Shown here one piece after another: positions 9 through 10,799 of a DNA stretch of 64,000 bases (positions are counted from its first letter, which is position 1; each line of letters starts with the position of its first letter). Under the pieces are notes generated by a model. That model ran no database searches and was not told the DNA's origin. It worked only from the letters and a program-made list of their open reading frames with translations. The translations under genes and the position numbers were made by a program. The stretch comes from Eutreptiella sp. 'Long Island Sound 2002' (lineage: Eukaryota; Protista; Euglenida): the NCBI GenBank assembly GCA_964036045.1, contig OZ038378.1:20956001-21020000 (forward strand). Direction: 5' to 3'.

Positions 9-149
9 CAAAATTTCTTCCGAGCTCCCCCGGCACGGTCGGCTGGGGAGCCCATGGAACATTCCTACCGATATCGGTTGCGTTTTGGGACCCGATTTGG
101 CTGCCAAAACTTCCGAGCATCTTTCCGAGGGATTTAAAAAACTTCCAAG
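9..149. repeat. Left copy of the ~140-156-bp terminal/subterminal repeat
   Basis: aaaatttcttccgagctccccggcacggtcggctgg...aaaacttccaagcg closely matches 10461-10799 in the same orientation and ends at the same base. Confidence 0.9.
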
Positions 150-294
150 CGTTTTTCCATCAGTTTTTTGTACAATGACCTACACCGTTCTTGGTTCCCA
201 AATCCCACACCTCAGCAAAGAAACACACAAAAAGACAAGCATGACCGTTCACTTACGCTTGAAATGTGAATGCTCAGTGCCTTGCCTGTTCATT

Positions 295-789
295 TCAGCT
301 TGAACTGTGAATGCTGTAATCTCCTTCGCTGAGCATCTGCACAGGACAGCCATCGCTTGACATGGCATCCACATCCACCACCACACGGCGATACTTCTTG
401 GGTTGAGGTTGGGGTTCAGGGTTGTCACTGGATGATGAGGAAGAATCTGAGGCACTTACTGTGGAGTCACCAGATAGGTGCACAGCATCATCATCCGAAT
501 CATTATCCTCGGGACTGCTACTGCTCCCACTATCACTGCTGCTGCTGCTGCTGCTGCTGCTGCCGCTGCTGCTGCTGTTGCTACGGTTACTGCTGCTACT
601 GCCACTGCCACGAGGGCACACAAGTTGCTGCTCAATGTCGCTATCAACAATGGGTACACGCGCCAACTTCGTACGCCTCATGGGTTGAACACGCTGCTGC
701 TCGTTCAAACCCGTAGGACCTTGAAATGAAGCAGCACTGTCCTCGCCCTCCGAAGGGGGTACAATATCAACTGTCGCAGGGTTAGAAAC
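295..789 (-). CDS. Ser/Asp-rich ORF in frame with the transposase, immediately after its TGA (probable C-terminal extension)
   Basis: The frame is open from 789 to 295 (VSNPATVDIVPPSEGEDS...PKKYRR...) and is separated from the transposase by one TGA at 790-792. A (GCT)n tract at ~537-600 encodes poly-Ser on this strand. Confidence 0.55.
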   Translation of the reverse strand, partial: VSNPATVDIVPPSEGEDSAASFQGPTGLNEQQRVQPMRRTKLARVPIVDSDIEQQLVCPRGSGSSSSNRSNSSSSGSSSSSSSSSDSGSSSSPEDNDSDDDAVHLSGDSTVSASDSSSSSSDNPEPQPQPKKYRRVVVDVDAMSSDGCPVQMLSEGDYSIHSSS

Positions 790-9012: not shown

Positions 9013-10068
9013 TTAGGCAGGGGGGGGGGCTTCTGCGGTCCCAACCTGGCCCTGGCCCTCACCCTTGGCCTGCAACCATGCACCTAAGATGGTAAGTCGC
9101 TGCCGCTTTGGTGCGCCCTCGGAAGAAGGTTTGGGGGCTGGGGCCAAAAGAAACTCAATGCCCCACAAGACACCGTGCGCATGGTACGTGGGTTGCTGGT
9201 CTGTTCTGAAAACCTCACCGTCGGGGGGGGTAACCACCTTTTCCCACGTGCCTGAGGGGGCTTGGTCCCACACCCGCCAGCCGTCCTTTTCCCCGAAAAC
9301 CTCTACCACATGTGCACCTGTGATGGTGGCTCTGAGGGCGCTGTGAATCGTTGCATGTGGGGACTCGCAGAAGGCATCGTTTATGATAACCCTCAAAACC
9401 TCGAACGGAACATGAATAAATGAGAGGGGGGGGGACTGCACGTTGCAGGAAACTACTTTTTTGGACCGCTTCTTGATCTTGGCCTCTTTGAACCAAGTAA
9501 CTACATCGCTCTGGGTCCACTTTAACTCGCGAATGGTACTGTCCGGGTGTGTGGACAGTATTGATTTCAAGTACATGTAATGTACACGCAGCCTCTCTTC
9601 AGATTCCTCTGCAAAGGTCCGGTCCGTGTTGTATTTCGGATCCGGACCAACAATGCAGAGGTTTCTGTATTGTACACCGTACGAGGTCTCATGTTTGCTG
9701 GGGCTTGTCTTGCCCACAGCCTCCCGTGTCGTCAAGACAGGGATTGAAAAATGCTTATGCATAAGCATAGCCAGCAAGGTATCCTTGGGCTGGATGCGGT
9801 ATGCATCAGGGACGACCCTGTCCAAAAAAACCCTTAGCATTCTGGGTTCAATGGTCTCTGACGGCTTATGCCGCAGGCACGGTGCTGCTAGGGCGTGTTG
9901 GAGGCGCGATTGTGTATCACCCGGTTCGGGAACTTCGGTATTGGCTGTGTCCGCGTCAATGAGCTCGCCCTCAAGCTCCAAATCTTGTTCCGGGAGCTGC
10001 TGAACGGGCTGGGGGGGCTGAGCGGACGAAGACGAGGCACTAGCGGCACTGCCTTGACTACCAGACAT
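9013..10068 (-). CDS. Unknown ~351-aa protein with a second copy of the H-x-V...GW-x-V-x-D module
   Basis: ORF 9013..10104; likely start MSGSQ at 10068, downstream of a branch-like cactaat and tccctttttgtgcccag|. Motif HVVEVFGEKDGWRVWD...QQPTYHAHGV. Confidence 0.65.
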   Translation of the reverse strand: MSGSQGSAASASSSSAQPPQPVQQLPEQDLELEGELIDADTANTEVPEPGDTQSRLQHALAAPCLRHKPSETIEPRMLRVFLDRVVPDAYRIQPKDTLLAMLMHKHFSIPVLTTREAVGKTSPSKHETSYGVQYRNLCIVGPDPKYNTDRTFAEESEERLRVHYMYLKSILSTHPDSTIRELKWTQSDVVTWFKEAKIKKRSKKVVSCNVQSPPLSFIHVPFEVLRVIINDAFCESPHATIHSALRATITGAHVVEVFGEKDGWRVWDQAPSGTWEKVVTPPDGEVFRTDQQPTYHAHGVLWGIEFLLAPAPKPSSEGAPKRQRLTILGAWLQAKGEGQGQVGTAEAPPPA

Positions 10069-10460
10069 GTGTGTTGCAGGTGACAAACAGTGTTCTGGGC
10101 ACAAAAAGGGAATACATTAGTGAGTCTACTCAAAGGGGCCTAGGTGAGAAAGCGACACACATGCAAAAAGAAAACCACAAAAGCAGGCACAAAGCATCAC
10201 AAGGCACAAAGGGCAAACATTCAGAAGCTTGAGTACAGTGTTCTCGATGCAAGTTTGTAGGCAAAGCAGCCACCAAGGATCAAACCGGCGTTGCACATGT
10301 CAAAAGCAAAAGTCCAAATTCACAAAGGAGCACAAAGGGGAAGCAATCATAAGCTTGAGCAGAGTGTTCTCCATGCAGTTTTGTATGCAAAGCAGACAAA
10401 GGGTAGACAAACATTAGCTTCAACATGCTGTTCTCCATGGCATCTTGCAGGCAAGGTAGG

Positions 10461-10799
10461 CACCAAGCATCCAACCAAAATTCCACTGGGTTCGGGCTGA
10501 AAAATTTCTTCCGAGCTCCCCCGGCACGGTCGGCTGGGAAGCCCATGGAACATTCCTACCAATATTGGTTACGTTTTGGGACCCGATCTGGCTGCCAAAA
10601 CTTCCGAGCATCTTTCCACCAAGCATCCAACCAAAATTCCACTGGGTTCGGGCTGAAAAATTTCTTCCGAGCTCCCCCGGCACGGTCGGCTGGGAAGCCC
10701 ATGGAACATTCCTACCGATATCGGTTGCGTTTTGGGGGGCCGATCTGGCTGCCAAAACTTCCGAGCATCTTTCCAAGGGTTTTCGAAAACTTCCAAGCG
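10461..10799. repeat. Tandem ~156-bp repeat (~2.2 copies), right-end counterpart of 9-149
   Basis: caccaagcatccaaccaaaattcc occurs at 10461 and 10617; internal sub-motif AAAA(C/T)TTC..CGAGC. Confidence 0.92.

Follow-up and report, generated by a model that had tools for sequence, protein, structure and literature searches.

Transposases of the EnSpm, Mirage, Chapaev and Transib elements have in common with RAG1 a C(2)C plus H(3-4)H signature, and this signature defines the CMCT clade, whose members have CA..TG termini and target-site duplications (TSDs) of 2-5 bp (PMC12730594). The clade also groups Plavaka, ESTA and Lanisha, with TSDs of 2 bp (Mirage, ESTA; TA), 3 bp or 4 bp, and ESTA was recognised only through structure-based similarity to RAG1 (PMC12730594). 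Here we describe a mobile element that occupies positions 1-10915, on the minus strand, of a 64,000-nucleotide stretch of contig OZ038378.1 (positions 20,956,001 to 21,020,000; the whole stretch is called the window below). We consider it very likely that this element is an autonomous-type cut-and-paste DNA transposon of the CMCT clade, with a RAG1/Transib-like enzyme, bipartite CAC-ends and a one-nucleotide stagger.

The window copy carries, in order, open reading frame (ORF) E, ORF D, a tandem array of a 149-bp unit, ORFs C and B, a second 149-bp array and ORF A, the putative transposase gene. Its true 5′ end is at window position 10915 and its 3′ end lies about 135 bp past window position 1, so that it measures about 11.05 kb if complete, and it looks like the full-length form. 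The original prediction, made from the letters of the window, had read this block as one element of about 11 kb that should recur with common termini and TSDs, and this proved correct: the block is multi-copy, and the copies in the assembly have sharp common termini and a TSD. We thus do not have a single-copy block without defined ends whose accessory ORFs occur apart from the transposase. Nine loci, all on different contigs of one long-read assembly (ENA ERZ25074135), were retrieved as sources of close copies; beyond the window copy, six complete copies and one 5′-truncated copy lie on other contigs of the same assembly, and the window has no second copy of the block. The ORF A clusters at 90% identity contain 157 and 121 member sequences, the ORF D clusters 224 and the ORF E clusters about 200, and from these cluster sizes we estimate that one genome holds about 200 copies at 95-99% identity.

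In gene orientation the 5′ end starts CACATGTACCACCGG... at window position 10915 and the 3′ end finishes ...CCCAGCACCATGTG; by pairwise DNA comparison the ends read 5′-CACATG...CATGTG-3′ in all examined copies. Homology among copies at unrelated loci breaks at the identical base, both at the 5′ end (seven copies, namely the window copy and those at loci L001, L003, L004, L007, L008 and L009) and at the 3′ end (again seven copies). When the two ends are aligned without gaps, 20 of the first 30 positions match, with conserved blocks at 1-6 and 20-29 (CAGCATAGAA). Each end therefore combines a brief motif at its tip with a second conserved block, a 10-mer, the two being separated by a 13-bp spacer, and this layout is mirrored at the other end.

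The bases that flank the element are identical on its two sides in all six complete copies (A/A, T/T, T/T, T/T, C/C and A/A). The copy at L003 is moreover nested in an ORF B paralogue: the sequence is GCAT[element]TTTCC at this filled site and GCATTTCC in three uninterrupted paralogues; the interrupted ORF is otherwise intact, and a single frame is regained only when the element is removed together with one T. Since the matching flanks, the empty-site paralogues and the restored frame agree, the TSD is 1 bp. The target sites (L001, L003, L004, L007, L008, L009 and window position 10916) loosely resemble half or full CA-N-TG with the central N duplicated, which in a set of only seven sites is no more than a hint. 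A Helitron, a Crypton or a retroposon had been entertained while no long terminal inverted repeat or TSD was apparent, and these candidates were dropped after the analysis had settled on CACATG/CATGTG ends and a 1-bp TSD.

This genome is rich in tandem arrays and in runs of genes on one strand, an array of light-harvesting complex (LHC) genes at locus L010 being one example. The block might be viewed as a cluster of host genes that has spread through segmental duplication, or as a domesticated RAG1-like host gene family, and in either case not as a mobile element. Base-identical boundaries on different contigs, flanks that differ from copy to copy, the 1-bp duplication, the precise insertion into a paralogous ORF and internal deletions that keep both ends all make such an origin extremely improbable.

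The putative transposase is encoded by ORF A:

790..2796, minus strand: ORF A, RAG1/Transib-like DDE transposase, 668 aa, recognised by fold search, model and conserved motifs

295..789, minus strand: in-frame continuation of ORF A past a premature stop, an acidic, Ser-rich tail that is predicted to be disordered

The 668+ aa given for this last ORF by the original prediction are the length of a truncated frame: a CGA-to-TGA change at 790-792 stops the window ORF A at codon 669, the frame is open on to position 295, and intact copies encode proteins of 827-830 aa (P0001, P0021, P0025 and P0030). Because of this nonsense mutation, the window copy is predicted to be unable to make full-length transposase. 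An exhaustive HMMER search found 347 relatives of ORF A, many of them fragmentary, with identities down to about 30%, and a full-length relative of 804 aa with 38% identity is present in a different assembly; scans of Joint Genome Institute (JGI) metagenome contigs found no relatives.

An AlphaFold (AF2) model was made for an intact 827-aa ORF A with an alignment of 37 sequences. Its mean predicted local distance difference test (pLDDT) score is 72; the core, residues 140-665, lies mostly at 85-97 except for a low-confidence stretch at 495-537, and the last 150 residues are disordered. The core is built as β1-β2-β3-α-β4, with D183 at the end of β1, D274 after β4 and E491 on a helix. In a Foldseek search of the PDB the top 43 matches of ORF A were all to mouse or zebrafish RAG1, the amphioxus RAG1-like protein (BbRAGL) or Helicoverpa Transib (HzTransib), with E values of 7e-6 to 4e-3, probabilities of 0.99-1.00 except for one of 0.93, and 400-600 aligned columns. 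An RNase H-like DDE core is thus present in the model, and the fold matches agree with the earlier placement of this ORF in the RAG1/Transib group. Matches to Hermes, a hAT transposase, were weak and far below those to RAG1 (E 0.014-0.2, probability 0.2-0.6); hAT elements have an 8-bp TSD (1 bp here) and a dimerisation domain, and the element has no hAT Pfam domain. When the model was compared with viral structures, one weak hAT-like match and nothing more was obtained.

Residues D183 (in YADGYxPRG), D274 (in ADHHHLWxE), C287-x2-C290, H335, H473-x3-H477 and D490-E491 are conserved in the ORF A family. The pattern of DDE, C(2)C and H(3)H that had been read from the window sequence is thus borne out by homologues down to about 35% identity, and the C287-x2-C290 and H473-x3-H477 pairs lie between D274 and E491. 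We regard D183, D274, C287, C290, H473, H477 and E491 as candidate catalytic and zinc residues; D201 is also invariant in the family and could be an alternative first acidic residue. With the RNase H-like DDE core, the C-x2-C/H-x3-H motif in this position and the CA..TG termini, the element agrees with the CMCT clade in fold, motif and ends.

Several observations weigh against this assignment. The TSD of 1 bp, found in 6 of 6 complete copies, lies outside the 2-5 bp range of the clade, and it comes from only those six complete copies. Pfam holds RAG1 and CACTA-type transposase models, and neither ORF A nor 37 members of its family matched any Pfam family at E values up to 1; PDB sequence searches with ORF A alone or with a family profile gave no match to RAG1 or Transib, and neither database gave a sequence-level match to models of RAG1, Transib or CACTA. 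Membership of ORF A in the clade consequently rests on fold and motifs. The TM-scores of the ORF A matches are low (0.26-0.40) and not decisive, as is expected for a flexible multi-domain model. The model of ORF E is poor (pLDDT 56, with a helical part and a small β-sandwich), and the ORF E family profile gave three weak homeodomain matches with E about 0.1, centred on WFxxxxxKKRSKK. Finally, we infer the hairpin chemistry proposed below, as well as DNA binding by ORF E and any role of ORF D.

Transib and RAG1, the only strong structural matches, have ends that start with CAC as do those of the element, and the motif-spacer-block organisation of its ends recalls their heptamer-spacer-nonamer layout. 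The differences from them are nevertheless substantial. Sequence similarity to them is undetectable, and the TSD measures 1 bp as compared with 5 bp. The spacers at the element's two ends are equal (13/13), and not 12/23 as in Transib and RAG1; in the one family available, the symmetric ends of CACATG, 13-bp spacer and conserved 10-mer may correspond to the CACAATG-like heptamer and nonamer-like block of their terminal inverted repeats. The element is also set apart by its length of 11 kb, up to four extra ORFs, internal satellite arrays and a phototrophic protist host. A RAG2-like Kelch or propeller gene, as in ProtoRAG, was not seen, in that Pfam gave no Kelch or propeller match for ORFs E, D, C and B and the ORF E model is helical with a small β-sandwich.

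En/Spm (CACTA) elements typically have subterminal repeats and more than one ORF on the same strand, and the element has a 156-bp repeat near both ends and five ORFs on one strand. It shares with En/Spm, in addition, its large size, a second putatively DNA-binding protein, captured genes, internal arrays and the CMCT zinc/DDE signature, and it differs from En/Spm in its CACAT...ATGTG termini (CACTA...TAGTG in En/Spm) and in its TSD of 1 bp rather than 3 bp. Like the element, Mirage, Chapaev, Plavaka, ESTA and Lanisha have CA..TG termini as well as the C(2)C and H(3-4)H motifs; none is reported to have a 1-bp TSD.

These likenesses could mean that the element is simply a diverged member of a superfamily already on record, be it EnSpm/CACTA, Chapaev, Mirage, Transib or some Repbase family of the host, and that its 1-bp TSD is a quirk and not the mark of a new lineage. 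TSD length already varies between 2 and 5 bp within the clade, and the CMCT signature, the CA..TG ends and the En/Spm-like architecture would all be accounted for in this way; on the other hand, ORF A lacks a Pfam match, the terminus is CACAT and not CACTA, the TSD fits no named lineage, and full-text literature searches gave no paper with a phrase for a 1-bp TSD and, among the papers listed, none linking such elements to dinoflagellates or Euglena. On balance we think this explanation rather unlikely. No named lineage fits the features tested, and by its termini, fold and motifs the element is placed within the CMCT clade, as a variant with a 1-bp TSD. Whether it deserves superfamily rank is a separate matter: a new RAG1/Transib-like lineage with near-blunt integration (1-nucleotide stagger), symmetric bipartite ends and a core of two proteins, E as a homeodomain-like binder and A as the transposase, still active in a green-plastid protist that is possibly a euglenophyte, is a proposal we make tentatively and hold to be somewhat less than probable. 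If it were true, the RAG1 structural family would extend well beyond animals, and the element would offer a tractable natural variant of RAG-type target joining.

The features other than ORF A are as follows, from the 5′ end of the element:

10886..10915, minus strand: 5′ terminus, with the 6-bp CACATG, the 13-bp spacer and the 10-mer (one mismatch in the window copy), from the homology break and the comparison of ends

10461..10775, minus strand: 156-bp repeat, 5′ subterminal, two tandem copies; the unit recurs near the 3′ end

10204..10462, minus strand: repeat of about 69 nucleotides, three copies, upstream of ORF E

9013..10104, minus strand: ORF E, 363 aa from TTG or 351 aa from the ATG at 10068

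6900..9083, minus strand: ORF D, an orphan, 727 aa, or 687-701 aa from ATGs, the first ATG at 9005

5487..6829, strand not assigned: 149-bp tandem array 1, about 8-9 units

4952..5581, minus strand: ORF C, 209 aa, or 176 aa from ATG

4754..4884: a single 149-bp unit standing alone between ORFs C and B, 93% identical to 3470-3600 (family D5)

3646..4740, minus strand: ORF B, 364 aa, or 337 aa from the ATG at 4659

2826..3606, strand not assigned: 149-bp tandem array 2, about 5-6 units

10..151, minus strand: 156-bp repeat, 3′ subterminal copy

Five long minus-strand ORFs had been reported from the window, and their ATG-counted lengths of 351, 687, 176, 337 and 668 aa agree exactly with the figures given then. 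At the local G+C content about 3.5% of random codons would be stops, and ORFs of 350-730 codons are far above chance. Basic motifs resembling nuclear localization signals, previously claimed for most of the ORFs, can be read in all five; basic stretches include KKKKIP and KDKGKGKGR in A, GKRRKK in D, KIKKRSKK and PKRQR in E, and KRVRLKR in C.

The two repeat families were described less accurately. The 149-bp repeat between the ORFs is real, but it forms two tandem arrays plus one solo unit and not a series of single copies, and the repeat of about 140-156 bp that was thought to bracket the block is indeed present near both ends, but is subterminal and does not constitute the element ends. All of its copies (one at 10-151 and two at 10461-10775) are in direct orientation. 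The repeats of about 69 nucleotides upstream of ORF E may be promoter or protein-binding sites. All three plus-strand frames of the 149-bp unit are free of stops, giving antisense ORFs of 309-449 aa through both arrays (2692-4040 and 5476-6970, plus strand); chance, composition and a real repeat protein are candidate readings of these.

The copies in the assembly differ considerably in what they retain between their ends:

L004, 10.0 kb: without part of D and the first array

L001 and L003, 9.0 kb each: a single merged array, no C or B

L009, 8.2 kb: D partial; C and B not detected

L008, 6.2 kb: internal deletion leaving E, the first 77 codons of D, and then A

L007, 4.0 kb: internal deletion that joins E codon 154 to A codon 11; D absent

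L002, length not applicable: everything upstream of the end of B missing

Many copies are thus internal-deletion derivatives, which range from 4.0 to 10.0 kb and keep both ends, and such heterogeneity among copies is the usual pattern for DNA transposons. The single merged array that replaces C and B in the L001 and L003 copies fits recombination of one array with the other, and the two 149-bp arrays are likely substrates for the deletion of C and B.

The original prediction saw in the other ORFs a dedicated accessory gene set, and for ORF E this view finds support. ORF E is present in every complete copy and always together with A, and an E-like sequence abuts an A-like one even in a sister family that is only 43% identical. 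Relatives of ORF E show 41-68% identity across subfamilies, including a contig from another sequencing run. The protein combines a helical region, in which WFxxxxxKKRSKK forms a homeodomain-like helix, with a β-rich C-terminal part; its low-confidence model gave only weak matches to HSP20-like β-sandwiches in the PDB, and a Pfam scan of its relatives gave only stray matches with E > 0.04. These sequence features suggest that ORF E may bind DNA, which would be a reasonable role for it.

The sister family is represented at L006 (9230-12145), where a B-like segment is followed by an E-like sequence fused in frame to an A-like core. This core is without the N-terminal 107 residues of ORF A, and the fusion is probably an old internal-deletion derivative. 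E-A fusion products are encoded by P0008, L007 and P0017. The P0017 fusion prompted the idea that a single ancestral gene had E and A as exons, which was rejected because L007 shows the same type of fusion by internal deletion and distant homologues keep the ORF A N-terminal domain that is missing from P0017.

For the remaining ORFs the notion of a dedicated set fares less well, D being restricted to the family, C and B being missing from most copies and B having a stand-alone paralogue. ORF D contains GKGKGK and acidic-Ser repeats at 7367-7572 in addition to its basic motifs. All of its relatives, 224 sequences in three clusters, are at least 91% identical, there is no Pfam match and the PDB sequence search was empty. 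Part of it is missing from L004, L008 and L009, and L007 lacks it altogether; between copies the ratio of nonsynonymous to synonymous substitution rates (dN/dS) is 0.34-0.64. ORF D thus appears, from its sequence relatives, to be a family-restricted orphan accessory protein. A C10 homopolymer at 9020..9029 (minus strand) lies just before the stop of E (9013-9015), and the D frame is open across this run. E becomes fused to D when the length of the run changes, and the 17 members of the P0225 cluster do read from E into D. The run might be a place where slippage or frameshifting occurs, a hot spot for mutation or an error in sequencing the homopolymer.

ORF C was found only in the window copy and in L004, where it shows few changes (dN/dS 0.70), and it has no family match in Pfam; it is a dispensable accessory or cargo gene. 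ORF B, present in the window copy and L004 and partially in L002, is Pro-rich with a folded-looking middle and a 96-bp coding repeat at 3700-3896; it has no Pfam match, and its PDB sequence search was empty. An intact stand-alone paralogue of B at L003 has 87% nucleotide identity to it and no other element sequence, and the homology covers almost exactly the ORF. The dN/dS value for ORF B against this paralogue is 0.23 at a dS of 0.33, and so both versions of B have been under constraint; the dN/dS values obtained for ORF B span 0.23-0.39. ORF B was most likely captured from, or is shared with, a host gene. The L003 paralogue (3341-3913 and 12923-13292) is split by the element insertion and has a short direct repeat on both sides, and downstream of it lies a gene for an Upf1-like helicase (AAA_11/AAA_12).

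Could all of the extra ORFs be captured host fragments or decaying passengers, as in Pack-type or CACTA capture, with only ORF A of importance? The absence of C and B from most copies, the partial or complete deletion of D in four copies with intact ends, the intact B paralogue outside any element and the lack of D relatives outside the family are what would be expected of passengers, and no E, D, C or B was detected near the older A-like families at L010 and L011. The conservation of E across subfamilies and in another data set, adjacent to A and sometimes fused to it, speaks against this, as do dN/dS values below 1 for D and B, and deletion derivatives can be mobilised in trans, so that the loss of genes from some copies is no proof of their uselessness. 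We regard the passenger explanation as a real possibility that falls a little short of being probable, and prefer to see E as a partner of A and only C and B as optional cargo.

By analogy with the related systems, transposition might proceed as follows. ORF A would bind the bipartite ends through the 6-mer, 13-bp spacer and 10-mer, nick at the CAC end and free the element, perhaps with a hairpin on the flanking DNA as in RAG and Transib; both 3′ ends would then be joined to the target strands with a single-nucleotide stagger, possibly at CA-N-TG-like sites. Of the accessory proteins, ORF E is the likeliest to bind DNA, for example at the 156-bp subterminal repeats, and would in that case parallel TnpA of En/Spm. 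ORFs C and B would be optional cargo, B probably coming from a host gene, and both could be deleted when the two 149-bp arrays recombine.

A protist family that retains the fold and the zinc/DDE signature but is invisible at the sequence level, and whose only strong matches among solved structures are RAG1, RAG1-like proteins and Transib, widens the known spread of the group ancestral to V(D)J recombination. A TSD of 1 bp implies a target-capture geometry unlike the 5-bp stagger of RAG and Transib, and structural comparison could show what determines the stagger. Hundreds of near-identical copies, with intact 827-aa transposase genes among them, suggest that the family is currently or was recently active, and it might serve as a genetic tool in its host. 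The element is also a clean case of internal satellite arrays and gene capture reshaping a large transposon.

A protist host had been suggested as a possibility in the original prediction, and the surroundings of one of the older A-like families agree with this. L010 carries, at 16900-21100, head-to-tail units for green-type chlorophyll a/b-binding proteins with a 737-bp period, and the best PDB matches of these units are polyprotein LHCI chains (9vfj) and green-algal Lhcbm. This green-type light-harvesting array marks the host as a phototroph whose plastid is of the green type, perhaps a euglenophyte. The dinoflagellate spliced leader was not found in the window or the loci, and an initial assumption of a dinoflagellate host was given up on that account.

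Next to the transposon, an ORF fragment with NHL repeats (10916-11391, plus strand) abuts its 5′ end. Beside this fragment is an element of the long terminal repeat (LTR) retroelement type with 70% G+C (11449-16370, minus strand), which has 144-bp terminal direct repeats that are 98.6% identical, a gag-like ORF with a CCHC zinc knuckle (15063-16226) and a reverse transcriptase ORF (11721-12890); around the boundary of the retroelement a 128-bp sequence occurs twice (11254-11381 and 11578-11704). The window gave no match in an Rfam scan. Other tandem repeats, with 104-bp and 83-bp units and two (AGTC)n microsatellites, occur at 17841-18214, 28920-29115, 49241-49315 and 51006-51068, and a large interrupted inverted duplication (32887-35337 and 37467-38815) has arms that are up to 100% complementary, with about 2 kb between the innermost arms.

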